36,848 bases of DNA from Trichosphaerium sp. ATCC 40318 (GCA_038496445.1 JALMLS010000049.1:1-36848), one strand, 5' to 3'; shown: positions 628-36,848, numbered from the stretch's first letter. Notes: a model not told the origin generated them from the letters alone. A program made the numbers and translations.

Positions 628-1990
628 TTAGACAATGACAACTTTGTTAATTCTTTGTCTTCCAAGGTTTGTGGACATGCATCTCTTGTACGAACAAAAA
701 CCTAAACAGGTCAATATTAGGGTTGTTATCAAGAGGAAAAACACATACACTTGGTTTCTCAATATCCAAATTGTCAACAATTACTTTTTCCAAACCTACA
801 CAGTATTTAACTAACTACTAGTTTTGGTATTAAAAAATAATCAACGCTTTACCTGAATAGCGAGGGTCACATGCAAGAGTAACTTCTGAAACATCACCAA
901 GGTCACCTCCTGAAAAACAGTTACTATTGCAAGGCATATAGAAAATCATGAGACAGTGTTTATTCATGGTACGCACCAGTAAAGGTGAATGTCACACCTG
1001 ATCCCAAGTGCTCTGAAATTTGAACAGAAGGCTCTGTGTATTTTCCCTCACAAATAACAGAGTTTGGATCATGCCAACGCCCTTCAAATGCTGAACAAAC
1101 AGCACACGTGTCCGCTGAAGAGATAAAGTTATTTTTTTTGACTACACTCAGAAAAAAAATGGAAAAGGAACCGTACTTGCTGTTCCACATGTTTGAGGAT
1201 CATCTCCACATACAAACCATCTGATTCGTAAAAATACGAAGAGCCTCTTGTTTCTTGTAACCCAAGCGATTGTAACGTGGATAGATCATACTTACGATTG
1301 GCAACTGTTCAATAAAAAAAAACCGTTAAAGGGATTTAAACCATGAAGTTACTAGAGCTCTTCAAACGTACAAACAATATTAGAGCAATCTGGTGGAAAT
1401 GGATATTGAGATGGTGGGTTTGGTGCTATCGATGGTACTTGAACGCTAGGGCAAGCATCCTTGGTTCTCACTGTAATCTACAACAACAACGTGAGCTATA
1501 AAATCAAGCTTGCCTCCAGTAATAGCTTATAAGTTTCGTACAACTGGACAGAGGATGATGTTGTTAACATATGTAGTCTCGAATCCTTAACAAAAAAAGT
1601 GAATATTTAACAAGTTTATGAAATTAATGGTACTGTACCACTGTAATTGGGATCACATATAAGATGCAGTTCTGCATTTGATTCTACAGCAGCGTCTACA
1701 ATCTTTATTATTGGGCGTATTAATGATTGAGAATATGTACATCCAAAGGTAATAGAAATGCCGACATCATCTCCATTTCGGTATTCCTTTATCTCTGTTT
1801 CGGGTTCAGTATAGAGTCCTTCGCAGTACGTGTATTCTGCGATTGCTTCTTCCTTTGTCACTTGTAAGCAGAATTGGACTAAGTGCCTTACCACAGTATG
1901 TACAAATCAGCAGATGGATTGCCAGCAATATAGTACGTGTTGGTTATTAATGGACGCGAATAAAAGCTTGTTTCTGTTCAGAAAAGTTGA
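628..1990 (-). CDS. Protein with two tandem MRH (mannose-6-phosphate receptor homology / ATG27-like) domains; 5' end unresolved, possibly a truncated pseudogene
   Basis: The spliced second repeat reads KYDLSTLQSLGWFVCGDDPQTC..CAVC..CEGKYTEP..VTFTFTGGD..SEVTLACDPRYSG..VRTRDACP. The first repeat has the parallel CEGLYTEP..LHLICDPNYSG..VRTKDACP. The YDLS.L / VCG / C-AVC / GG / CDP / T..ACP pattern is typical of MRH repeats. Stop TAA at 628-630. No start codon or signal peptide was found. Confidence 0.55.
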
Positions 1991-2148
1991 AGTGTTTTAT
2001 TTATTTTGCCAGTTCAACTTGATTTTTTTTTTTGTGCCTACATGTTACAAGTTTGGTTGAAATATTTTTTTTTTCCTTTAATGGTATTTGGTGATAATGT
2101 ACAACTGTACAAGCGCCATTATTTAGCGCATATAGCGTGAATAAACAA

Positions 2149-5100
2149 TCACTCATAATAAGCGTCTGTTGAAGAATTTGTGACAAGCTTGTCAAACGTT
2201 GCGACCGCTGCAATAAATTCATAAGAAAAAAAACATAAAAAATCCCTTGAAGATCCAAGAAACGTACGTGGCGCCTCGGTGCGTAAACTTATTGCTAATT
2301 TATTGAGTGTGCTGTGTATATGTTTAAAATCGGGTCGTTTCTCTGGATCAGCGTCCCAACATTGTATCATGAGTTCCTTGAATCATTAACCATCAGCAAA
2401 TATACAAATCAAAAAATGATACATACCTTGAATGTAGGACAACATCCTTCCGGTATCTCTGGACGTAAATTCTCACGTACAACACGGAATGGAATTTCAT
2501 AAACCTCTAAACCAGGGTACGGTGAAGATCTTGCTACCTAAACATGCAATGTAAGAAAAAAACCGTTTTTAAAAGAATAATGTAAGAATAAACACTGAAT
2601 AACATTTACAATAAAAAAAAATCACGTGCCAACTCCCATAAAAAAATGCCAAAGGAGTAAGAATCAGATTTCATACTAAACTTCTTTTCTCTAATAGCTT
2701 CGGGTGCCATCCACTTTATAGGAGATGGTCCAGATGTGCGCACATAGTCTCCTAATAACCAGTGAGTCAGACACCAACATAAAAACAAGACATTACCTGT
2801 CATGACTGTAGCAAGTCCAAAATCGCAAACAATACCATGCCAGTCGTTGTTGACGAGAACCTAGCAAAAGAAACGATTACTTTCTAGAAGATCCATACTC
2901 CGTGTATCTACGTACGTTTCTACCGGCGATATCACGATGTACAACCTTCTCAAGATGAAGGTGAAGAACACCTGCTGCAGCATTGGCAGCAATCTGAACA
3001 AGCCTCTCCCACGCAATATCAGACTTATGTACAAGCAATAAATCCGAAACTGATCCTTTAGGATAGAATGGCGTCACTATAGCAAGCGGTTCATAACAGA
3101 TACCACACAGCCGAATAATATGCGGGTGGTTTCCAAGTTTGCTTCACGATAGTGTTAGATTTAAAGGTCGAAAAAAAACTTGTCCGTACTGCATCAAAGA
3201 TGACTCAAGTTTTAGCAATTCTATCGCGTCTGCAGACACGCCATGAAGTTTCTTTACAGCAACTACTACACCTCGCCAAGACCCTTTGTAAACTGAACCC
3301 TAGATCACCCAAAAAGTGAGATACAATACCACGTATGCGGTAACTTACAAAAGCGCCTGTTCCAAGCTTGGCAGACTCATCTACTGACAGTTCTGCCCAA
3401 TTTAGAGCTGGTAAAGGTGTTGCATCACCATCTACAGAGACTTGTAGACCACTAGAAGACGTTTGTCGACTGTGTGAACTCAAAGTTTCTATATCCGTCA
3501 ATTCAACAGTCACCAAGTAAGCCTGAAATACATGTTTTAGAATCACCAATCTCTTCTCTAGAATACGTACAGGGATTGCTTGTCGCGGATGAAATATGAT
3601 GTATTCATCATACATCGCTTTAGATGTGCTCCTTCCACCTGTATACACCGTCAGCATTAATGCAAGTGTACAGTTCGTACCTTCGATGAACACTGAATCA
3701 TAAGTATGCAACACGTTGCTGGATGATAGTGTGGTAACCTGGTCCAGCGGTACATGTAATCCAGTAGCCACTGTAAAAACGAGAAGAGATACAAAACTCC
3801 CTGAAGCCCATTTTTCAGACTTTAATGCTGCGATTGGCTTTGTTGCGAAATACATGCCAACAGGGGTCACTCTCTCTTGTTTCTTGTGGCGACGCACAGG
3901 TGCTTTTATGCCCTTCGTTATTATTTCTTGTCGTACTATATCACTATGTACAATTGGAGCATACCTACATGGCGTCAGACGTCGAGTCAACGAAATAGAA
4001 AATTCTCTAAAAAAAGTTAAATCCTTACAAAAGGTTAAAAGTTTGGTAGTCCTTCAGCTGTGCCAGCCTAGTAAGAAACAGTCGTCTTTGTTTACTATTA
4101 GTAATAGCATCTATACATACGATTGAAGCTTTTTGATCCGCAACAATACCTCCTAAAGTGAGTTAGCAACACATTGACGATTCTTTGCCTAAACTTCTAT
4201 TTGCCCACAAAAAAAAAAGGTAACTTACCTTCAATACTCTCTTGTATGCGTTTAAAATCGGCATGTGATGGATCAACAGGCTTACTACGATAATCCATCT
4301 CATCTAGAGAAAGAAGATAAGGACGTTGAATTATACAACGTATCTACACGAAATTTCGTGGATTTTGAGAAAATTCCGATATTTCTGAATTTGACCTCAT
4401 TTTTAAAAAAAGGAGGCGTTCGTACTTGGTAACTTAAACATGCGCTGTAATAAATTCATACGACCAGTATCATTGTCTTTTACCCATGATTGTGAAGTAT
4501 AGAAGTGTCTCATAAATGACAACAGTTGTCCATCCTCTGTAATGACCATGGAAGCGCCCTGTAGTCAAAAAATTGTCAACTTCAAAAGATGGCAGAATTA
4601 AAGAAAAAAAAATAAACTGATCATGTACGCAATCAAAGCAATCTTGTATCGTAGCTTGAGAGAGCTGTTTACAATAAACAATCAAGCATATGGATCCGTT
4701 TTCATTTCTGACGCGTTTTAGTAAATCTAGACCTGCTTTTGGAGCGAATACGAGGTTAACAAAGCCCTGAGAATAGAGTTACCAATTGAACAGCCATTTT
4801 TGCGTCAAAATAGAATAAACGAATTAATGCGTACCCGTTCTACTCGTAACATGTCTGTTATTACCACCTGTGTCCGTTTGTAAGATTATTTTTAAGTTTA
4901 TAGACAAACAGCTGCGATTTTCCTCTATCTTTCGGCGTTAGCGTACCTGCGCTTTGTGGTTCCTCATTTTGCGCATAGATTCAGCGGTTGTATTGCACAC
5001 ACAAACTTCCCATCCAATTTTCCTCAAGGCTTTCGTTGTTTTATCATGTCCACCGTTTCTGTACGATTGGTGCTAGAATTTTAGGTAAGTAACTGCTGGT

Positions 5101-5199
5101 AGGCGTTTACACCAATTTCAGCTTGCTTACTGTCCAAATAACACACGGCTTATCGTTATTGGCATCGTAGCTTCCTCTTTTTTCATTGTACTCTGTCAT
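2149..5199 (-). CDS. Multi-exon fusion: N-terminal CheY-like receiver (REC) domain + PARP-type ADP-ribosyltransferase-like domain + C-terminal tyrosine-kinase-like protein kinase
   Basis: Manual splicing gives REC: [55 protein letters not shown]-like: [50 protein letters not shown]. Kinase: [53 protein letters not shown] at 5199, TGA at 2149-2151. Confidence 0.8.
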
Positions 5200-5578
5200 C
5201 AACGGTCAGTTACTGTCATTGCCAACGGACAACTGCGTTGTTGTGCCCAATGGTATAATTGAATGAAATTGCTGAGTGGAGACGGAAAAAGCAAAAAAAG
5301 TCTTTAGCAGTAAAAGCGTCCTTTCTGGCGTCTCGTCGACTATGATTGTATTGGTAATGCGCTAGAGGTAGTTCAATCATTAGCAACAAGTCGGTTTACT
5401 AATTTGTTTGCAATACGCACGTGGGCACCGTTAAATGGTCCCAGCACACGTTTACAGCACAGAGCGCTTAGTTAGGCCTATGTAGGCGGCTGTCAGTGCG
5501 CCAGTCAAAACAGTTCTTTTTAGTGAGACGTTTACAGTTTGTTAAACGTCAAATAGTCTTAAAGAGCTTCTAACAAGT

Positions 5579-8500
5579 ATGCGTTTGCGGGATCTCATCA
5601 AGGCCGTCAGAGCTTGCAAAACTGCTGCGGAAGAGCGTGATTTGATTACAAAAGAGCTTGCGCAAATTAGGGGAGGTATTAGACAAGACAACCAACAAGA
5701 CCGCACTCGAAATGTCGCCAAACTACTCTATTTTCACATGCTCAGTTATCCTACGTCGTTTGGACAAATGGAATGCCTCAAATTGATCGTAAAACCGTCG
5801 TACGCAGACAAAAGGATCGGATATCTTGGTCTGATGGTTCTACTGGACGAAAACCAAGAAGTACTCATGCTCGTCACTAACTCACTAAAATCGTATCCTC
5901 TCATGATGTTTTTGACGCCTTTGGCGGTTATACGCTGATCAGCGAAAACTTTTGCTTAAAACACTTTTTGTCGCCATTTTGCGCGCCTAGGGAAACCATT
6001 GCGACGCTTTTATATTTTTAAACGCTATTTTCCTTCACTATCTAGCGACCTAACTCACGCAAACCAATACATTGTTGGTCTCGCTTTGTGTGCATTGGGA
6101 AACATTGCCTCTCCAAGTATTGCCAGAGACACTGCTCCTGAAATTGAAAAACTACTCAAACACACCAACCCTTACATCAGGAAAAAGGTACAGTCCCTTG
6201 TTATCCTGTGACACGCAAGGGATTTTTTTTAAATTAATTTATTCCCTCAGGCAGCACTATGTGCCCTACGTATTATAAGAAAGGCTCCTGATCTTACAGA
6301 GAACTTTATTTCGCGTATGAAGAGTCTTTTGAGCGAAAAAAATCACGGTACGCTAAAAACACGTAACTATGGGTTATAAGCTATTTAAAATAGCGTGTCA
6401 CGATTTTTTTGGGGTTTTTGGAACGCGTTGAAAGTTGAATTTATTTATTTTTTATTTGAAAATGTACCTCTTTTATCAACTCGTAATTTATCTCATTGAC
6501 TCTCTTAGGTGTATTGGTAACTGCATTGAGCCTTCTCATCGAATTATGTCGCATCAACGATGGAGAGTTTATCTCTAAGTTCAAAAAGGTAAGGTTTTTA
6601 AATTGGTCACTTGTATTTCTTTTTTTTGTTTTTATTTGATTGTCGTTAACCGCTTTTTTTTTTCTAGCTTGTCCCACAACTCGTTCGCATCCTTCGTCAT
6701 CTAACCCAGTCTGGATTTGCACCTGAATATGATGTGAATGGTGTTACTGATCCGTTCATACAAGTCAAAGTATTGCATTGTTTGCGTATTCTTGGTAAAG
6801 GTGATGCTGAAGCCAGCGAGCTCATGAACGATATTCTCGCTCAAGTTGCCACAAACACTGACAATATGCGTAATGTTGGTAACGCTATCCTTTATGAGTG
6901 TGTCAATACTATCATGTCCATTGAGTCCGAAAATGGCCTTCGTGTTTTGGCTGTGAATATCCTTGGTAGGTTCTTATCAAACAGGGATAACAACATCCGG
7001 TAAGTGCATAGATATAGCATTGTGAAACCTTTACTGACATTGTACTAGTTATGTTGCTCTCAATACACTATGCAAGGTCGTTTCTGTTGAGCCAAAGGCA
7101 GTACAGCGTCATCGTAATACAGTTGTTGATTGTTTGAAGGTATGTTCAAATGTCCTCTTTTTTTCTTCTTTTCTTTTCTTCAATTACAGTTGCTCACATT
7201 TAGACAGGATGATGATATATCTATTCGTAGACGTGCCTTAGAGCTCATTTACTCTCTTGTGAATACAAACAATGTCCGTGTGCTTGTACGGGAATTGTTA
7301 AATTTCTTGATGGTCGCAGATGTTGAATTCAGGGCGGACTTGACCGCTAAGCTCTGTTATGTTACAGAAAAATTTGCTCCAGCTAAACGTTGGCATGTTG
7401 ATACAATCCTTCGTGTTATGGCAGTTGTACGTCATTTTCCCGTGTGTGAACGTTGATGTACTGATTTTGTGTTTGTAGTCCGGAAATCATGTCCCAGATG
7501 AAGTCTGTTCTAACCTCATTGCGCTAATATCTTCAACACCTGAATTACAAGCTTATGCTGTTCACAAAATGTATCTCATTCTAACAAATGATATCACTCA
7601 GGTACACTTACGTTACATATTAATTTTACCGCATGTGGCTATTGTGATCATCTGGGAGTGTGTTCAGATGATCACTCTAGTTCAAAGCATTTGGGCTATC
7701 TGCATGCTATTTATTTATTATCTTGCCTCTATATGTATTTATTTTGTATTTTTGAATGGGTGTAGACAATCGCAGGGTACAGCAGTAACTATGCGACATC
7801 ATCCACACCACAATACATAAGCATGTTCGCACGGTCACCATCTGCATGTCAATCTTTTTTATTTTTACTCTTTTGCCTTTTTTTTCAAGTTCTTTGAAGT
7901 TGTTGCTTATGTGTTATTTAGCAATCCATGGTCCAAGTTGGTGTATGGTGTATTGGTGAATTTGGTGAATTGCTTTCACAAGTTGTAGAAGGCGATAATT
8001 CAGTCACTGTTACTGAGAAGGATGTTATTGACCTCTTGGCACGCATCCTCACTTTCCCAACAACCACACAAGTGACACGAACATACTCCCTCAATGCTCT
8101 ATCCAAACTCTCAATTAAATTTACTCAAGCTGTCACAGCACAAATCAGAGTACGGTCAACACTTCTATCCTAACATTCTTTGGTACTGACTGAAGCATAA
8201 AAGGGCATTTTGGAGAATCACAAGGCTGATTTTGATTTGGAATTACAAAGTCGTGCTTGTGAGTACCTCAAGATCTTGGGTGACTGGAACTCCTTTTCAC
8301 AGAAGATTTTCGAAAAGATTCCACCACGAGAATATGTACGCCCAGAACGCGAAGACTATGGTACATCATCAGAACCAACGACGTCCGAGCCGTCAACACC
8401 TGGTCGTGTTACTACTCTACCAACAACCGCTACAGCTACAGCAGTCGCACCTGCTGCACCAGAACCTGTTGCTGACGTGCCTGTACGTTTTGTTTAACCA

Positions 8501-11750: not shown

Positions 11751-12592
11751 TCTGTCTTTTGTCCTGGGCACATCAAGAGGTTCTACAGCCTCAACGGGTA
11801 CTGTATTAGGCGTGTATGGCATTTGTTGGGTGTAAACTGGTTGAGGCGTCGCTGGATAAGGATTCCCTTGTTGTTGAGGTTGCGGAGCGTACTGACGTGG
11901 TGGGATAACTGGTGGAGCATTGTTGTACTGTTGGTATTGGTTGTTTGTAGTTTGTTCGTTGTTTGAGAATAATGGTGAATTCGGGTGAAGTACTGGTTTG
12001 CTCATTGTTTGTGAGGTAGTTATTCTGATATTGCAGTGATGGTACGTTTTTATTGTTGAGTTATTTTATTCAATATTGACTTAACATGAAACAAAACTGT
12101 CTTAATCGTAAAAACTATGCTGTGTGCATTCTAGACCTTCCTACAGAGATTTTAAGCCATATTTTACAGTACACAACTAAAGCACGATTTGCAGCCTGTC
12201 AAACATGCCATAGCCTTGCTTCTGTCATTCACGATATTATTGGATACGGTACAGTTTGTATTTCAAACGCCTCACAAGCAAAAGCAGTGTTAAAACATTC
12301 AAGTACTCTCCGGCACACAAGCATTAAAACCGAAGATGCTCTTTGGAAGGATGATATTGTCAAGTTATTTGCAGGAGTTCATACTATTAACCTTGCACAT
12401 TGTTATGAGATTACAGATGAAGGGATCAAAGCTCTTTCTGGTGTTCATACCGTCAATCTTTCGTGTTGCATAAGGATTACAGATGAAGGGATAAAAGCTC
12501 TTTCTGGTGTTCATACAATTAATCTTAGGTTGTGTAAACAGATTACAAATGAAGGGATCAAAGCTCTTTCTGGCGTTCATACCATCAATCTT

Positions 12593-14569
12593 CAGGTCTG
12601 AAAATTATCATGGTATAATACCATATTTTATGGTATAATCACCTTTTATGGTACAAGCTCAGTATAATCCATAATTATACCATATAATTATACCATAAAA
12701 TATGGTATAATACCATGTTTTTTGGACAAATGGTATAACAGCCATTATACCATGTTTATACCATATCTCAATTTATAGAATATAATTATACCATAAAACA
12801 TGGTACTATACCATGGTATTATACTGCATTTTAAAGTATATTATACCACACATTATACCATATAATTATACCATAAAACACAGTATTATACCATGGTATT
12901 ATACCACATTTTACAGTATATTATACCATGCATTATACCATATAATTATACCATAAAACACAGTATTATACCATGGTATTATACTGTATTTTACAGTATT
13001 GTATACCATGCATTATACCATATAATTATACCATAAAATGTGGTATTATACCGTGGTATTATACTGTATAAGTATAAGTTAGTCAAAGCTCACTTGGTCT
13101 GCACTTGATTTAATAGCATATGGACCTACGCAAACGCCATACCACACAATGCTTTGACAGTAGCTGTTATTGAACATAATTGGCATATAAATGTGTGAAA
13201 AACAGTTTTAAGAGAGAAATCTGGTAACGCGCCCCAATTACGGGCGTTTTAGGGATAAATTGGCCAACTTTCTCCGATTAATGGTATTTGAGGAAGAAAC
13301 CACTCTGCGTACCCCATGTTAGAACGCTACAGTGGTAGACACACCAAAAACGCGTTTAGCGCTCGAAAAATGCCCATTCGCAAAAAACCTCCAATTGGAG
13401 GTTTTTTTCTCCGGCTCTCATTTTTTTCTCCCCTCCATAGGCATTTTTACACTCAATCAACGCCATACAGCCTCATTTACCAAATCAGGAGCAAAATTAT
13501 TTATTTTTTTTTGACATTCTTGATATATGCCCCAATGTGTGTTAAACTGCGCAATTAGTGTTATAAGGCAAAGTTGTTTCAGAGCCTACCCATTTTTCGA
13601 GTTTTTTGGTTTTTTTTGGATTTTTTTGGATTTTTTTGGTTTTTTTCCTACTAAACGCCCGCATTTGCCAGAACAGATAGCATTTAGGCTCTGCACCCAT
13701 GCGTTGACCTTACGAGTGATATTGTAAACTAATTGGCTAAGCCAGGGCATAAAACTAAGTCTTGACCAGTTTATCGCCCGCACAACACAAGGTACGCTAG
13801 AAAGTAGTTGTTTTAAAGCTGTTTGCCATAGGTTTTACAGGCTTAATAGGTGATATAAAAAAAACAAAACGTGTTAGCCGCCCAACCAGGTACTATTCCG
13901 CTAGAACTCGTTTCCGATGAAGTTGGTAGCTATTTTCATTTCTTTGTTTTAGTCTTGGTTTGGCTTCACTGTGCAGGTCATTTGTTACTCTCAGTGCTGC
14001 CATCACAACAAAACAACAATTTTTGTATGACTATTTATTTTGTGTACAAGAAACCAAGCCGGCGCTAACTCTTCTTTTAGGTTTCATGCTATATCCATTC
14101 AATGCACTTACAGCAAGTACGATCTGTTCTTTTAAGGTTATTTGATCACTGCAAAAAAGGACATGGGCAAAACTAAAGGTCACGGATGTAAACAAAAAAA
14201 AGATGTATTAATAAATGTGTTTTTATTTTTAGAACAGTTTTTACACGGTATAATACACCTGGTTTTGTGGTATAATCTACCAAGTTTTAAGGTATAATAT
14301 ACCAGGCTTTATGGTATTATACTGTGTTTTATACCATGTTTTATGGTAGAATTATACCATATAATGCATTTTTTCAGGTGAAAAAATATGGTATAAATTC
14401 GCACTTTCTACTGTATATTTATGGTATAATTTGGCTGTTTCATGGTATAAATCCTTTGATTTATGGTATATTATACTGGAATTTGTGGTATAAAATTGGA
14501 ATCAATGGTATAATTATACCACAAATTCATGGTATCTACCATAAAAACAGCTTGAGAATTTTAGACCTG
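12593..14569. mobile_element. Non-autonomous TIR DNA element (1977 bp) with dense subterminal repeats, CACTA/EnSpm-like architecture
   Basis: Left end caggtctgaaaattatca; reverse complement of the right end caggtctaaaattctca. TT flanks both sides. Many ATTATACCA/TGGTATAAT motifs lie at ~12608-13070 and ~14245-14545. No transposase was recognised. Confidence 0.85.
12781..13070 (+). repeat. 80-bp tandem repeat, about 3.6 copies, in the left subterminal region of the TIR element
   Basis: Units beginning tataattataccataaaa start at 12781, 12861, 12941 and 13021. Confidence 0.92.
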
Positions 14570-14831
14570 TTCATATTGCATAAAGATTACAGATGAAGGG
14601 ATCAAAGCTCTTTCTGGCATTCATACCATTCACACTAACATTCACAATAGTACTTCAGTGCTATTGTAGGACTTTTGGAGGTACGTTACCTCTGAAAATC
14701 TATGTGAAATAAAATACATACTATGACTACATTTCATCTGAAAGGTCACGTGATATGTTCTATGTAAGGTTGAAATCAATCATAACTATGTACACGGTCC
14801 TTAAGACCATAATAAATAGTATACAACACTA

Positions 14832-15239
14832 GAAAAACAAACCAAATACGCAAACAAACCGAAAAAACTCAAATTACTCAACAAAGAACTCAAAAACCTC
14901 GAAAAACAGTTTGGGAAAAACATAGAATGGATTCTGGATGATAACGAGGAGGCAGATACCTTGGCCAAAGAGGGAACGTTACTAAACAAACCAAACATGC
15001 CAAAAAGAAGAATAGCTTTTAAATACACTATACAACCACAAAAACAAAATCATCAAAAGCAATGTCAGGAAATACATCAAAGAAGCCACCAATCGTGAAC
15101 ACAAAAGAGACATGGAACGGAAATACCCCTACCTAAACCAAATTAGCCACAAGATATCCAACCAAATAGTATACGATAAAATTCCACTTATGGACACAAT
15201 CGCGTGCTTCCAATTCAAACTAAGAAATAATAACCTTAG
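14832..15239 (+). mobile_element. 5'-truncated, frameshifted non-LTR retrotransposon (LINE), left part with the RNase H C-terminus
   Basis: Translates to ..WILDDNEEADTLAKEG (RNase H GNExADxLAK motif), then after a frameshift ..NVRKYIK..FQFKLRNNNL. It has the same A/C-rich sense-strand bias as the right part, and the frame continues across the LTR insertion site (NNL|SGR). The left boundary is approximate. Confidence 0.75.
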
Positions 15240-15322
15240 TGTAATGGTCAATAAAAGTAGTTTACCTACGTTATCACCTAACTAACGTCTCGTTATCTTT
15301 ACCACTATACATACCCGTTACA
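15240..15322 (+). repeat. 5' LTR (83 bp)
   Basis: tgtaatggtcaataaaag...atacccgttaca; identical to 21153-21235 except at position 6 (T versus C). Confidence 0.96.
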
Positions 15323-15323
15323 G

Positions 15324-15341
15324 TGGCGACTACGAGCAGGA
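15324..15341 (+). promoter_or_regulatory. Primer-binding site complementary to a tRNA 3' end
   Basis: TGGCGACTACGAGCAGGA lies 1 nt after the 5' LTR. Its complement ends ..CGTAGTC-G-CCA (G73 discriminator). The tRNA species cannot be determined by eye. Confidence 0.85.
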
Positions 15342-15391
15342 TTTTCACTTGAAAAAAAAAAAAAGAGATAAAAAGAAAAGAACAAGCAACG

Positions 15392-18300
15392 ATGGAAAAA
15401 GCGCACGATCACCTTCAATACATGCCATACACCAAGAAAGACGACGATGGCGAGTGGAACACCGATTGGAAAGGAAAGAAAAGTATTTCCGAATCGAAGA
15501 TTGGATACAACCAACGCGGACTGGAGTTCACGGGCAAGTTAATGGACCTCCCCTACTTTTTGGAGAAAATGAAAAGAGTTGCACACGACACCAAGCTAAG
15601 CGAAACCGCATACACCATTATGCTACAAAACAGCGTCACCAACATTCTCGCTGATGGACTCAACTCAGTCGAGAATACACTAGAAGCTTTCTTGGAGCAC
15701 ATCTGCAAATGCGCCTTTAGACCAAGCAAAATGAAGTTCTACAGACAAAAGTTTGCGGCGGACAGAATGAGCGGCGACGATACCGTCAATAAGTGGGTAC
15801 GCCGAGTGCACGCTTATGGGAAGATTTTGGGGAAAACCAACCTCGAAATGGCTACAAGATTCAAGGACGGCCTACCACCCAACATAGAGAACGCCCTACG
15901 CATGGAGACAGTACACAAGACAGCAGAAGAGCTTTCTAAGTACACGGCGATGGACTGGGCTGATCTAGCCTCAGAGTACGAAGCGGTGTCCAACAACGGC
16001 GAAGAAGACACTATTAACACGCTACAACGCCCTCAACACGACAACGACCAACAACAAGGCGGTAACGAATGGAGACCTCCACCACCGCAAAGAAACGCCG
16101 TACAAGCCTCATACGACGCACAGGCCCCTTTCGTACGCAATTACGGAAGACATAATGCAAAATACTCTAAAAAGGGACATTTAATATGGTTCGAACAGGG
16201 TACAGACGTTAAATGCGTCTACGACGACCAATCTGGCTTCCTTCGCCGCTATGCTCCTGATGAACGCAGTATATGCAGTTTCTGCCATCGACCAGGCCAC
16301 ATAGCGTCCAAATGCGGTACCAGACAAAACCAACAAGGAGGATATAATCCGTACCGTGGAAGAGGAAAATACCGAGCAAGAGGAAGAGGTAGAGGCAGAG
16401 GCAGGTACGCACCGTACAGAACTAGAGGCAGTAGACCAAGAGGTAGAGGCAGAGGTTACTGTAGAGGATACCAGGGCCACCACCGCCAAAATGACCAAGA
16501 CCAATACGACGGATATCAACCGGCGTACCCTCCTCCGCGTAATTACCAAGCCGACCCACCTGCTGTGCAACCGCCTAACGCCTACCCTCCTCCTGCTGAA
16601 GACCATAGTAAAGGAGACACTGTTGCTGTATTGACCAATAATAAACCAGAATTTGTTTACCCGAAGCCTCGTTCTATGACCAATGACGAAACTCCTAAGT
16701 TAGAATGCATGGTGATTAACCAGATCAAGAAAGACCGCAACAATACCTTCTCTGTGACCTACTGCGCTGAAGAATTCAACCAAATAGGTGACAGCGACCA
16801 ACCCAATAACACAGAGATCAGGTACAGTATCCTAAAGGCATCCAGCGTCATTAGAAATTATAAGTTCGAAACTGTATTCGACACAGGTGCTTCCGTTTCC
16901 CTTATTGACCTCAAGGTCGTGCGTCAGCTAGGGCAAATGAGCGAAATTATACGAGAGTACACCCGACCTCTGTACACAGCAGACAACAAGACCATCAAAG
17001 TTTACGGCAGTATAAACCTACCCATCAAAGTAGGAGGAATCACGATCATACATAAAATGTTAGTGATAAAAGACTTTAAGTTCGACATACTCCTCGGAAT
17101 GGACTACATGCAAAAGACCCAATGCAACATCAATCTGGCAGCGCATCGCATCACACCTAAAGGTGGCTTCCCTATACCACTACACACCATCAAGAGGATA
17201 TACAAGAGCGACAACCTTCATGTCTTCACGCCCAACAGAATATCTCTGCCGCCCCACGCACAGACAGAGTTCGAAGCTATAGTACCATACGCACACAACA
17301 GCATCAAAGGATACATCGAGGGACACAAGGAACTGATTACAGAGGGCGTCTATGTCATACATTGCAAGAGCAGACCTACAAAGAAAAGGGTAAAGGTCAT
17401 GATCTTGAACATGACCAACAGAAGAGTATGCCTACCTCGATCTTACGATATTGGCACCTTCAAACGGCCTGACCCAGGAGATACAGTACATTCTTTAGAA
17501 GACAACCAAGCCAAGGCGCTGGAAGAAATAAATGAGATGTTCAAACGGAAACGTACCGATGAGGAGATCATGGAAATATACAGACTCTTCAAACTGGGCG
17601 ACAAGAAGCTTACAGAGAAACAGAAGATGATGGTCGCAGTCCTCCACCTCGAATATAAAGAACACTTCAGCGAGAAACTCGTGCCTGGACCTACATTGAC
17701 AGGCGTCAAACACGCTATTAATACAGACGACACCAAAGAGCCTGTGGCGCTACCGTACCGATACATGACCCCTCTCAAAGCCAAGATTATCCGCAAAGAA
17801 GTAGAAAAGCTATTAGAACAAGGAATAATCCGAGAATCCGACTCACCTTGGTCGTCACAAGTAGTCCTGGTACAGAAGAAAGACGGCAAATGAAGGTTCT
17901 GTTTAGACTTCAGGGAGCTGAACAAGATCACCAAGAAAGTAGTACACCCCATACCAAGGATAAACGAAATGTTAGATGCCACCGCTTACGCTAAATTCTT
18001 CTCCACTTACAACCTAACAAATGGTTACTTCCAAGTCGAAAACAAGGAAGGAGATATCGAGAAAACAGCCTTCTCTACAATAGACGGACACTTTGAATTC
18101 GTAAGGATGCCGATGGGTCTGAAGAACGCGATGTCCACCTTTCAGAAGCTGATGAACCTTACCATGAGCAGCCTACTATGGAAGCTGTGCATGTGCTATG
18201 TGGACGATGTGATTATCTTCTCCAAGACCTTCACAGAACACCTAGTCAACACGAAATTAGTTCTAGACCGCATCAAGCAAAGAGGACTCAAACTAAAGGC

Positions 18301-20923
18301 AAGCAAATCCCACATATTCAACACCAGCATACAGTTCTTGGGACATAGAGTATCAGAAGAAGGAGTGCTACCTAAAACCGACAGCATCGAGGAGATCCGC
18401 CAGATGAGAGAACCAAACGGCCTAGAAGAACTAGAAAGATTCCTTAACATGACCAACCATTACCAACGCTTTATAAAAGACTACACACATGTCACTGAAC
18501 CACTTCAAAAGCTGCAAAGACAAGACATCGAGTGGAGCTGGGAACAACCACAGATAGAAGCGTTCAAGTTGTTAAAAGCTGCGTTCACTACACCACCAGT
18601 ACTTAAACACCCAGACTTCAACAAGAGTTTCGAGCTCCATGTAGACACGTCCAACTATGCGTGTGGAGCAGTCCTCAGCCAAAGGGATGAAAAAGGTAGA
18701 GAAAGACCAATCGCATACTTCTCCAAGGGCTTCAGCGAATCACAGAGGAAATACTGCACCACAGAAAGGGAGCTGCTAGGAATCAAATTAGCGATGGAAC
18801 ACTTCAAAAACTACCTAGCGTTCTCCAAGTTCAAACTGACCGTGTATACAGACCACAAGCCACTGACCATGCTTACAAAACTGAACAACGTACGATCGGT
18901 CATTGCGAGGATTATCTTAACGATCCAACAATTCGATTTCGAACTCATATACAAACCCAGCCGACTACACGTTGTACCCGATGCACTGTCACAAACACCT
19001 TTCGCTGCTGACCAAATCAATGCCATCAAGACCGGCAAAAGTGGCAGTGTCATCAAAGGAACTAACAAGAGTCATGTAGACTGGCACCAAGCGCAAACAA
19101 AAGATGCCACAACCGCTGTGTACATTAAGTATCTGACCACAGGACAAATAAACAGAGCCATACGCGAGACCCCACAATTTAAGAAGTCCATGTTCTACAC
19201 TCGAGTTAGAGAGCTTTGAGTAGATGAAAATCAGGTGCTATACAGACGTACAGAAGAGATAGACGGCAACACGACCTACCAAGTATATGTGCCGAACAAC
19301 ATAAGCCTAAAAAGAGAAATCTTCAAGCTGGGCCATGACGCACCGTTTGCCGGCCACTCAGGTTTTGAGAAGACCTACAACAAACTCAAACAACGTTTCT
19401 ACTGGCCAGGCATGTTCACAGAGACCAAGGAATGGTGCAAAAGCTGCATATCGTGCCAAAAGACCAAAACACCAAGGTTACAGAAGGCAGGCAGAATGGG
19501 TGGCCAATTCCACATTGGAGTTCCTTTCGGGCTCGTAACGATGGACATTGTGGGACCACTAAATAGAACGCCTAGAGGAAACACATACCTACTCGTCATC
19601 AACGACAACTTTACAAAATGGGTAGAAGCCTTCCCAATGCGCGACCAAGAAGCAGTAACGGTGGCCAGGCTTTTCGTAGACGAGTGGTGCTTCAGATACG
19701 GAATACCTAAAAAAGTATTAACAGACCAAGGCACTAATTTCACAGGAGAGCTCATGACACAAGTGTATGACATGCTCCATATAAACAAGAAACAGACCTC
19801 AGCGTACCACACACAAACCGACGGACAGACCGAGAGATTTAACCACACCCTAATAGAAATGATAAGACATTTTGTGAACAAGGACCAAGAAAACTGGGAC
19901 ATATGGGTCACGCCGTCCCTATTTGCCTACCGTACCGCTGTCCATTCCACCACCAAATATACACCGTACAGAATGCTCTTCGGTACCAGACCCACATTAC
20001 CATTAGATGAACTAGCAAAAGGAAGAGGCCTACTAGAAAACAAGTACAACATGGCTGACTGGGCTGAGACCTTAGCACATAGAATGAGAGCAGTCCACGA
20101 ACTAGCGAAAAAGAACATATTAGCCGAGAAAAGAAGACAAGCCAAATATTACAACAACAATAGAAGAGATGTAGAATACGAGCTAGGACAAAAGGTTTGG
20201 TTATACATACCTCACGTAAAAACAGGCGAAAAGAAGAAACTCACACAAAAATGGTATGGGCCATACGCAGTTCTACAACGAATTGGATACGTAAACTACC
20301 GCCTGGAAATCCCAAAACACAGTACAATCAATCCTGTGGTACACATAGAAAGATTGAAGCCGTTCGTCGATTCGTACCTCCGACCAACACAGGACATACA
20401 TTTGGAACATACACGTAACATATACACCGAGACAGCTGAGAGAGGACATCACATCAGAGAAACCAGCGAAGACGATAGCAGCGTATACATACCGGATGAA
20501 TCATCACAAAAAGGCACCAAAACCATGAGAGATGCCAGAGAAATCGCAAACAAATTAAAAGAAAAAGTATCCACTCCACAACCTATGGAAATAGAAGCAA
20601 CATACACAGAAGACATACACGTACGAAGGAGCCGACGTGGAACAAAAACAACCAGAGTAGAACGGCTAAAAGAGTTGCTAGAAAACACATACAACGCTAT
20701 GAAATCCTTACGACCATCCGAAGCAAAGAAAAATTTAATTGAATTGATGGGAAAAGGATCTAGATTTATACGAGATAGCGGTAAATGTAACGACCTAGAG
20801 AGCGAGATAAAGTACCAAGCAGGATGTGGACCAGAACAGCTAAGAGAATGGGTCAGAAAGATGCTGGAGAACTTCGAACAAGTATTTAAAGAAGAACATC
20901 TATTAGCGATACAGGAATACTGA
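15392..20923 (+). pseudogene. Single-frame gag-pol polyprotein with two premature TGA stops (17891-17893 and 19217-19219)
   Basis: The ORFs at 15392, 17969 and 19235 share one frame. Zinc knuckle CSFCHRPGHIASKC; RG-rich tract; protease FDTGAS; RT SPWSS..KKDG, MPMGLKNA, YVDD; RNase H DTS..GAVLSQ, EREL, YTDHKPL; integrase H..H..C..C, DIVG, TDQG, QTER; WYGPY motif. Confidence 0.93.
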
Positions 20924-33052: not shown

Positions 33053-34995
33053 TTACCAAAAACCTTCATTGTTTTCACTTGATATAAAAAATGCGCCAGC
33101 CAGCTGAAGTGCTTCTATACCTTTGTCACTCACTTTTGTTCCTCCCAGTCTAATAATGTGAACACCTGCTAGGGCATTAACACATTCATCTGTAACACTT
33201 GTAAATCTCAGAGAAATTTCGTGGACGCCAACAAGTGCTTTTACACCTTCATCTGTAACTTTAGTGCCCTCTAAATCTATAGTGTGTACACCTGAAAGTG
33301 CTTTGACACCTTCATCTGTAACTTTAGTTTCCGTAAGATCAATCGTATGAACACCACTCAATGCTTTTATACCTTCATCTGTTATAAGGGAAGAATGGGC
33401 AAGTTTAATGGTATGAACTCCTGCAAGTGCTTTTAATGTTTCATCTGTAACTTCAGTGTACTCCAGGTCAATGAAATGGACTCCTGCAAGTGGTTTTACA
33501 CCTTCATCAGTCACTCTTGTAGAACGAAGGTATATTGTGTGAACACCAGCAAGTGCTTTTACACCATCATCTGTAACCTTAGTGCCACCGAGATAAATTG
33601 TGTGAACACCAGAAAGAGCTTTGAGACCTTTATCTGTGATATTAGATTCCCAAAGGTTGATTTTGTGCACGCCGGCCAGTGATATAACACCCTGTTCTGG
33701 AATATCACATGCTGGAAGGTGTATAGTATGAACACCTGCCAAAGCTTTCATTCCTTCAATTGTAAATTCCTGATTCATTCCAAGTCTGATTGTATGGACG
33801 CCCGCAAGTGCTTTCAAACCTTCATCTGTTATTGAAATTCCATCTAAACTAATTGTATGAACCCCTGCAAGTGCTTTGACACCTCTTTCTGTAACCATGG
33901 TATCATTAAGGCTAATTGTATGAACACCAGCAAGTGGTATCACACCTTCATCTGTAACTGTAGTTCTTTCCAGGTTAATTGTGTGAACCCCAGCAAGAGC
34001 TTTTACACCTTCATCTGTAAATTGATAACAAGACGTAAGATTAATCGTATGAACACCTGCCAGAACCATGAGCATCTTGTCTGTAACCGCTCCAGCCAAA
34101 TTGATCTTGTGAACTCCTTTAAGCGCTTTAATACCATCAATAGTACACCTGCAGTTGTCAAAATCTATTGTGTGAACACCAGCAAGCGCTTTCAGACCTT
34201 CATCTGTAACTTTCCTTGCTCTATCAAGGCTAATAGTATGAACACCAGCAAGCGCTTTGATTCCTTCATCTGTTACTCTAGTACGACCAACATCAATAGT
34301 GTGAATCCCAGAGAATACTTTTATTGAATTATCTGTTGCTTTGGTTTGTCTTAGGTTGATACTATGAGCACCTTTAAGCGCTTTTATACCTTCATCTGTA
34401 ATTCTTCGCACTCCTTGAAGGTTGATTGTATGAGCACCTTTAAGCGCTTTTAAACCTAACACGTGATAAGCTTTTCAAAAAACGTGATGTCATCGTTTTT
34501 GAATAAAATTAGAAAAACGTGATTGGAGATGGTTGTATTAAACTGATGAGTGTTTTCAGACAGGACAGTCCGCGTGTTTAAGTTTGAATGAGTACCTTTG
34601 TCTGTTATCAGAGTTCTCTTTAGGTTGATGGTGTGTACACCTGATAAGAACGATAATGCTTCGTCTGTTACATTGGTATACTTGAGATTGACACTACGAA
34701 CGCCTTTAAGCAGTTTGATGCCTTCACTTGGCACTGATTTGAGTACTTTTACATTGGTGTGTTGTAGAGCGCCCTTGTACTTTGCGAAAGCCTTGGCATC
34801 ATCTATCGTCTTCAACGTCGCGCTGTAGTACCCAATAACATCATGAACGATTGCGGCAAGTCTGTGACAACTCTGAGCGGCTGAATAACGTGCTTTGGTA
34901 GTAAAACAGAGAATGACGCCCAAAATCTCATTAGGCAGTGTAAGGAGGTTTGCGTTAACCTTTGTACGAGGATCGGACGTTATGTATTTATCCAT
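33053..34995 (-). CDS. F-box-like + long LRR array (more than 20 repeats of 21-22 aa); one intron at 34456-34595
   Basis: F-box-like LLTLPNEILGVILCF; repeat GVHTIxLxxTxVTDEGVKALA. The GT..AG intron joins the two ORFs in frame (TDKG|LKALK). Confidence 0.9.
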
Positions 34996-35570: not shown

Positions 35571-36848
35571 TTAGCATTGACTATTTCCTACTATAGTAAT
35601 GATAGTTGCAAGAGAGAAACCAGAGTCACCTGCTCCGTTTTGTTGACTGAATGGAGTTGCAACAATAGTTAAATCAACTTCATCATTTTGAGAGTCACAT
35701 ATTGGATTAGAATTCAAAGGCAACGTTACACTTGCAGGTAAATTCACGTTTCTATTGTCGTGTGTTAGTTAAGAAAAAACAAGGAATGTGAGACGCACAT
35801 TGACTGTGGTGACCCTACACCGCTTATGTCAAAAGTAACTGACCCAACAGGTCCAACTGTTGACGCTTCAATTGTTACAGTTGGTGTTTGAACATCAGTG
35901 ACATCAATAATGTTCCCATTAAACAACGCTTCTTTCAAAACAGTTGCTCCACTCAATATTCTTATGCTAGGAACTGTTGCGCAAGAATTATCACCAGAAA
36001 GTGGTGCTATAAATGCCTCTTCTGGCACAGAACCATCAGTTATCCTCTCAAGTATTGTATTCATTGTTATTTGACGGACTTGGTCAAGTTCAGCTAAAGA
36101 ACAATGTTAGAAGCGATAATCTCAGGTGTATTTTAAGACATAGCATATCCGCAGTTTGTTTAACATACCTTGTGTCAGACCAGGCTCATTGATACCAGGC
36201 ATGTTACCCAGAGAAGGAATATTCTCATACCAGAACCTATCACCATCTCTAAGACGTCGGAATTGGTCAAGAAGCACTTTGGATAAGGTTCGACCCATCG
36301 CTGATCCAATTTCTTTTTCTTCCGCCAAAAAAGCAAACCAAGGGTCCAAAGCAGTAAGCTTTTGATATACCTGTGTAATGTTATTAGGCAAGGTATGAAA
36401 GTACTCATGTATTACGTCTCTCGTATTGGCGGCCAAATCAGGTACATCAGAGAATTGTTCAAGCCATGACTCGAAACATTCTACATCGTCTACTGCAGAT
36501 AATGGTGTAGAATTGCAAAAATCATATAAGCTAGTTGTTCCTGGTTCCAGTGGATTCCAGCTGCTGTATACTGTTTCGAAATCAGCTATACCATTGTCAC
36601 GTGCACGGGCCATGAACAAAGACACAACGTCTATAAACTATTAGAAGAGATTTTGGGATGAAGTAAAACAGTAAAATTCGACACTTACCAACTCCAACAG
36701 AGGTTTGTGCAGGAATATTAAAGTTTCTCAAAATATCTGATACCATATGATCTATTTGTTCTATTGGTGTGTATATAATAGCACGAAGAACATTATCAAA
36801 GCTTCCAGCTGCGCAAGTCTATGAAAAGAACATAAGATAAAGAGAAAA
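35571..36848 (-). CDS. Animal-type haem peroxidase (peroxidase-cyclooxygenase superfamily), 3' part with an extra beta-rich C-terminal domain; runs off the window
   Basis: RARDNGIADF, LDPWFAFLAEE, MGRTLSKVLLDQFRRLRDGDRFWYEN. The last exon ends ..TIITIVGNSQC*, with the stop at 35571-35573. Confidence 0.88.

Follow-up and report, generated by a model that had tools for sequence, protein, structure and literature searches.

Phosphorylation and ADP-ribosylation of proteins are written mainly by protein kinases and PARP-type ADP-ribosyltransferases, which are normally separate proteins whose cross-talk is indirect. We know of no organism in which NAD+-dependent and ATP-dependent protein modification are wired together directly. 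A locus of Trichosphaerium sp. ATCC 40318 raises the question of whether one polypeptide can hold both. It lies in a stretch of 36,848 nucleotides (JALMLS010000049.1 of GCA_038496445.1, analysed as a whole and hereafter called the window), where a first-pass annotation had read a CheY-like receiver (REC), a PARP-catalytic-like domain and a tyrosine-kinase-like kinase in a single protein. The window has a GC content of 37% and short introns and is eukaryotic. The draft genome of the organism comprises 70.87 Mb at 37.69% GC with a mean intron of 75 bp, and its description mentions neither ADP-ribosylation nor the present gene (PMC10521059). An animal origin was considered but set aside, as the genome has receiver domains and agrees with the Trichosphaerium assembly. 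We find that this gene, referred to here as the fusion gene, is real, transcribed and conserved, and that it combines domains of known kinds in a new way. The finding concerns one species, and two of the three domains are recognized by weak homology.

Phase arithmetic and per-exon translation place the fusion gene on the minus strand, 5199..2149, in 17 exons with 2025 coding nucleotides, corresponding to 674 codons and a stop. The spliced frame runs from ATG 5199 to TGA 2149 without stops and in consistent phases, across introns of 42-122 nt. The features of the gene are as follows.

5200..5270, minus strand: 5' untranslated region (cDNA 5' end at 5270, a loose end in run X3)
5199..5131, 5072..4947, 4867..4835, 4766..4629, 4558..4426, 4303..4229, minus strand: coding span, exons 1-6 (phase arithmetic, translation, contig joints)
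4152..4029, 3964..3681, 3638..3571, 3522..3349, 3299..3190, 3141..2916, minus strand: coding span, exons 7-12 (same evidence)
2860..2797, 2751..2630, 2537..2427, 2376..2268, 2207..2149, minus strand: coding span, exons 13-17 (same evidence)
4484..5151, minus strand: putative receiver-like (CheY-like) domain, end of exon 1 to first half of exon 5 (52-sequence REC profile, collinear score)
3499..4283, minus strand: putative divergent PARP-type ADP-ribosyltransferase domain, exon 6 to start of exon 10 (profile A1, hhalign, collinear score)
3406..3498, minus strand: Ser/Thr-rich linker within exon 10 (exon 10 translation)
2296..3405, minus strand: protein kinase domain, tyrosine-kinase type, exons 10-16 (PF07714, solved matches)

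Joints at all 16 introns are present in the spliced contigs of three public runs, each from a different study (X1, X2 and X3; region 1900-5500). The contigs form an overlapping chain, in which X2 covers exons 1-4, X3 covers exons 4-9 as well as the 12-13 and 13-14 joints, and X1 covers exons 8-12 and 14-17; none of the contigs of the three runs carries all 17 exons by itself. This chain bears out the earlier assumption of one transcript. The first-pass annotation had also held that canonical GT-AG splicing keeps one frame from ATG 5199 to TGA 2149, and here the frame stands while the splicing is canonical in all introns except one. That exception is a GC-AG intron separating exons 14 and 15 (2629..2538, from a 2536/2629 joint with a 2-base ambiguity), and the protein reads ...WEL/VARSS... 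across the joint. A GT-AG alternative at 2625..2534 would keep the frame, but the contig joint differs from it. A single exon, exon 10, holds the last strand of the PARP-like domain (AYLVTVEL), the linker and the first part of the kinase glycine loop (GTGAF), so the junction between the PARP-like domain and the kinase is independent of any splice.

The loose end of X3 at 5270 is the reverse complement of the SMART template-switch oligo, which identifies X3 as cDNA and puts the transcript start about 71 nt upstream of the ATG. A short upstream open reading frame of six codons (MTVTDR; ATG 5219 to TGA 5199, minus strand) supplies the first AUG of the transcript. The TGA of this frame overlaps the main ATG (TGATG), an arrangement that suggests termination-reinitiation control of the main frame. 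A further X3 contig (window 2938-3636, plus strand) has three joints with plus-strand GT..AG ends, for introns 3167-3215, 3333-3405 and 3517-3561, which lie opposite exons 9-12 of the fusion gene and are without a long open frame. This contig looks like a spliced antisense transcript, and its continuation into sense exons probably stems from unstranded assembly.

The first exon of an adaptin gene (5579-5938, plus strand; Adaptin_N, 1.1e-22) lies in divergent orientation to the fusion gene, with about 310 bp between it and the cDNA start, and the two genes may have a promoter region in common. A Ty3/gypsy-type retrotransposon with protease, reverse transcriptase/RNase H and integrase occupies 15392-20923 of the plus strand in three long open frames. 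Other features of the window are listed below.

12086-12601, plus strand: F-box/LRR protein
33053-34462, minus strand: long LRR_6 (RNI-like) repeat protein
36122-36625, minus strand: animal-haem-peroxidase fragment

Judged by its motifs, the C-terminal domain is with certainty a protein kinase. The glycine loop, the beta-3 Lys, the HRD Asp, the Asn, DFG and APE are all present in the exon translations, and PF07714, with a curated cut-off of 23.1 bits, matches exon 12 (2.5e-16, 60.2 bits), exon 14 (1.1e-13, 51.5 bits) and exon 16 (4e-5, 23.5 bits). The kinase motifs quoted in the first-pass annotation are read in the translations as well, namely HRDIAGRN in exon 12 and PIKWMAPE in exon 14, and both are tyrosine-kinase signatures (HRDxAxRN and PxK/RWxAPE, respectively). 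A Tyr is present in the activation loop (GDYVRTSG). In the PDB, exons 12 and 14 have tyrosine kinases as their best solved relatives (EGFR, ErbB4, CSK, ITK, JAK, Syk and Met); all 60 of the 60 matches listed for exon 12 belong to this class, as do those listed for exon 14. With these signatures and matches, the domain is assigned to the tyrosine-kinase type and not, as first proposed, to the tyrosine-kinase-like (TKL) kinases. The nearest kinase paralogue in the same genome is 38% identical.

The two N-terminal domains show weak but significant homology to receivers and to PARPs. When Pfam was run per exon up to an E of 10, the expected PF07714 matches appeared in exons 12, 14 and 16, while those anticipated for PF00644 and PF00072 did not; the locus is also absent from the whole-genome scan with PF00072 and from the 91 exon matches of the whole-genome scan with PF00644. 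The similarity emerged from two profiles searched against the 1178 stop-free six-frame pieces of the window. Profile A1, made from seven PARP domains of the same genome and used without filtering, put the piece 3208-4053(-) at the top of the 1178 (11.6 bits, E 0.01; next piece 3.6 bits), with an alignment that covers profile positions 59-159 of 166. The REC profile, made from 52 receivers, likewise gave its highest rank among the 1178 to the exon 2 piece (11.6 bits, E 0.015, profile 17-46), placed exon 4 fifth (profile 56-86) and aligned exon 3 at 45-52. Exon 5 gave no alignment to the last receiver strand of the REC profile, and exons 6, 7 and 10 had no significant PARP score individually. 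The earlier placement of a CheY-like domain at about 5150-4490 holds as to the kind of domain, by weak collinear profile similarity; exon 5 ends at 4426 (donor GTACGA in the contig joints) and not near 4490.

Collinear exon sums give 16.4 bits for the receiver-like region, where 3000 shuffles reached at most 6.6, and 14.5 bits for the PARP-like region, where they reached at most 8.2; the residue-shuffle null used for both domains ignores secondary-structure periodicity. In a natural-sequence control, the 5177 six-frame pieces of 16 other loci in this genome reached at most 5.7 bits with the PARP profile and 5.8 bits with the REC profile, versus 11.6 here. Comparison of the PARP-like region with PARP by hhalign yielded P 0.004, and P 0.002 with the paralogue added. 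By contrast with these profile results, the PARP-like region found no relative among 1.84 billion representative proteins and no match among PDB sequences, in the ESM Atlas or in metagenome and viral contigs; since the metagenome and viral contig searches were empty, there is no sign of a giant-virus origin. An AlphaFold2 single-sequence model of 3349-3963(-), a stretch that includes two translated introns, had a pLDDT of 30, too low for the model to inform on the fold.

These results bear on whether the 390 N-terminal residues could be a lineage-specific sequence unrelated to receivers or PARPs, with a resemblance due to chance or convergence, in which case the tyrosine-kinase-type kinase would be the only recognizable domain. 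No curated model, database or structure matches them, and the supporting scores of about 11-16 bits come from profiles built from few sequences, but a fortuitous resemblance would have to account for two independent profiles that each put the predicted exons at the head of 1178 pieces, correctly ordered and at the profile positions expected, for scores that none of the 3000 shuffles and none of the 5177 natural pieces of the same genome approach, and for aligned columns that coincide with known functional motifs. We consider an unrelated N-terminus improbable. A PARP-type fold is, on the profile evidence, strongly favoured, and a receiver-like fold is likely.

A paralogue of this N-terminal region is found on contig C138 (about 13,936-16,030, plus strand), with collinear counterparts of exons 1-10 in the same exon order and with one intron position shared. 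VIVIDMLRGRQ is the counterpart of exon 3 and YDEYAIFHPYQAIP that of exon 9. Pfam, run per exon on its N-terminal domains, gave no match. There is no kinase beside the C138 paralogue within 3.4 kb, and a stop follows shortly after the PARP-like domain. Because C138 carries the receiver-like and PARP-like pair without a kinase, the pair appears to form a module of its own. The module shows no sequence relation to 16 sampled COR-A (Roco) loci, ten of which were covered up to 2 kb after COR.

A second copy of the whole gene (C117:156217-159498) is 98.4% identical, with differences mostly in introns, and on this comparison it represents either a haplotig or a duplication of very recent date. All nine exon differences between the two copies are synonymous, while 49 differing columns fall in 1286 non-exon nucleotides. 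Among the variants of the runs, five of the six in exons are synonymous; the exception, at 3396, changes Ala to Ser among the first residues of the kinase span, immediately past the linker. Pooled over copies and runs, 14 of 15 exon differences are synonymous, and the coding sequence shows the imprint of purifying selection.

We then consider what the receiver-like domain may do. The ITDM motif named in the first-pass annotation is read in exon 3 as VVITDM, whose Asp would end beta-3; VVITD is aligned to lltD of the profile, the phospho-acceptor strand. Neither this protein nor the C138 paralogue has the other hallmarks of receivers, namely an acidic pair after beta-1, a Thr/Ser in beta-4 and a Lys in beta-5. 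The residues found instead in the fusion gene are Thr-His after beta-1 (CVIWT/HQS), Tyr/Cys in beta-4 (LIVYCK) and Thr/Glu in beta-5 (MVITED), the beta-1 and beta-5 positions being placed by eye and not by profile. If the domain were a working receiver, as the earlier proposal of a His-Asp phosphorelay input implied, the VVITDM Asp would be phosphorylated by a histidine-kinase phosphorelay and would then switch on the ADP-ribosyltransferase and the kinase. This Asp is indeed aligned with the phospho-acceptor of the REC profile and is conserved in the paralogue (VIVIDM), and the genome has clear PF00072 receiver proteins (16 exon matches). However, Thr-His stands where the Mg-binding acidic pair is expected, with the paralogue also lacking the acid, and the substitutions in beta-4 and beta-5 bring the missing hallmarks to four of five in both paralogues. 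With the beta-3 Asp as the only one of five hallmark residues kept, phosphorelay input is unlikely, and we give a working receiver very little credence. Pseudo-receivers are derivatives of receiver domains, and the receiver-like domain of the fusion gene is probably one of them.

The alignment to PARP keeps the motif register along the domain: GMYFA falls on GlYF, KSEKW on kSndY, YDSV on fdSV and DEYIIF..Q..P on dElVVYd..Qv.p. Candidate residues of an NAD site are the His of IVHSD, the Tyr of GMYFA, the Ser and Trp of KSEKW and the Glu of YDEYIIF. The Tyr and the Glu (DEYIIF) lie within aligned columns, and the His just before the alignment, where it is placed by spacing only. The PARP-catalytic-like reading of the first pass is supported by a collinear profile similarity that is weak yet statistically real, with candidates for the His, Tyr and Glu. 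The domain has diverged far more than the genome's other PARP domains. In sequence it is nearer to the mono-ART-like PARPs of that genome, and the score dropped when the profile was broadened with PARP1-3-type proteins and 21 exon fragments. The expanded ANK-PARP family (LMVHGTS..GYYGQGIYFT), tried as a closer relative, proved no closer.

The same genome holds a large expanded PARP-like family with the exon motif LMVHGTS..AGFGTVS.LDGGYYGQGIYFT and a Lys-rich tail. Its members lie on contigs C310, C294, C270, C328, C280, C64, C94, C250 and others, and ankyrin repeats precede the copy on C310. This family appears to account for many of the 91 PF00644 matches in the genome.

The PARP-like domain of the fusion gene could be catalytically dead and bind only NAD+, ADP-ribose or a protein partner, serving as a sensor or scaffold for the kinase. 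HSD replaces HGS/T at the His motif, the domain is much the most divergent in comparison with the other PARP domains of the genome, and the C138 paralogue has Phe for the triad Tyr (GTFLA); in the fusion copy, on the other hand, candidates for the His, the Tyr, the Ser-x-x-aromatic motif and the Glu are all in place, and the coding sequence is under purifying selection. A dead enzyme is in our view rather unlikely.

Altogether, we lean towards an expressed and selectively maintained three-domain signalling enzyme, composed of a pseudo-receiver, a PARP-type domain and a tyrosine-kinase-type domain. Its product would be a soluble protein of 674 residues. The N-terminal CheY-fold domain, which no longer has the metal-binding acidic pair, Thr/Ser or Lys, would most likely serve as a docking, dimerization or allosteric module and not as a phospho-acceptor. 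The PARP-type domain, with its candidate His-Tyr-Glu residues, probably binds NAD+ and may transfer ADP-ribose, and the tyrosine-kinase-type domain, catalytically complete by its motifs and with an activation-loop Tyr, is predicted to be active. The receiver-like and PARP-like pair would be a lineage-specific two-domain module, and since this pair exists without a kinase on C138, the fusion gene presumably arose by joining the module to a tyrosine-kinase-type domain. A bolder version assigns regulation between the domains: one polypeptide would ADP-ribosylate and tyrosine-phosphorylate its targets, or modify itself by one chemistry to control the other, with a receiver-derived switch that gates both. 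We hold such a dual writer to be improbable.

If it were true, it would couple NAD+-dependent to ATP-dependent protein modification directly. As a natural fusion, the gene would offer a simple system in which to study the mutual control of ADP-ribosylation and tyrosine phosphorylation. It also adds to the signs of large-scale shuffling of PARP-like domains with signalling modules in Trichosphaerium sp., where the PARP profile has 91 exon matches genome-wide. Finally, the case shows how much of the domain content of intron-rich protists with sparse sampling is missed by standard annotation; two of the three domains here escape Pfam when it is run per exon.

The combination of a receiver-like, a PARP-like and a tyrosine-kinase-type domain was not found in the literature or databases, in agreement with the first-pass annotation, which knew of no characterized protein with such an architecture; two surveys of eukaryotic PARP architectures give no kinase or receiver partner (PMC2964712, PMC4245714). 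On the kinase side, the nearest comparison is with the metazoan-type tyrosine kinases of amoebozoans, described for Acanthamoeba castellanii, where 'unique domain combinations' are reported (PMC4053784), and for Physarum polycephalum (PMC4758236). These are likewise soluble and carry the tyrosine-kinase signature motifs, whereas their reported partners are SAM domains and transmembrane segments, and a PARP or receiver partner is mentioned in neither report. With the receivers of PF00072, the fusion gene would share the (beta/alpha)5 pattern and the Asp that ends beta-3, with helices 1-3 and strands 2-4 collinear with the REC profile; unlike them, it is without the acidic pair, the Thr/Ser and the Lys, and it has an insert of about 15 residues after the Asp. 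With the H-Y-E ADP-ribosyltransferases of PF00644, it has in common the order and spacing of the motifs H-x-S/T, G-x-Y-F, S-x-x-aromatic, y-D-S-V and E-Y-I/V-I/V-F/Y...Q..P.YL. It differs from them in scoring below every curated threshold and in the Ser that replaces Gly after the His, and, in contrast to PF00644 proteins, its PARP-like domain is joined to a kinase and a receiver-like domain.
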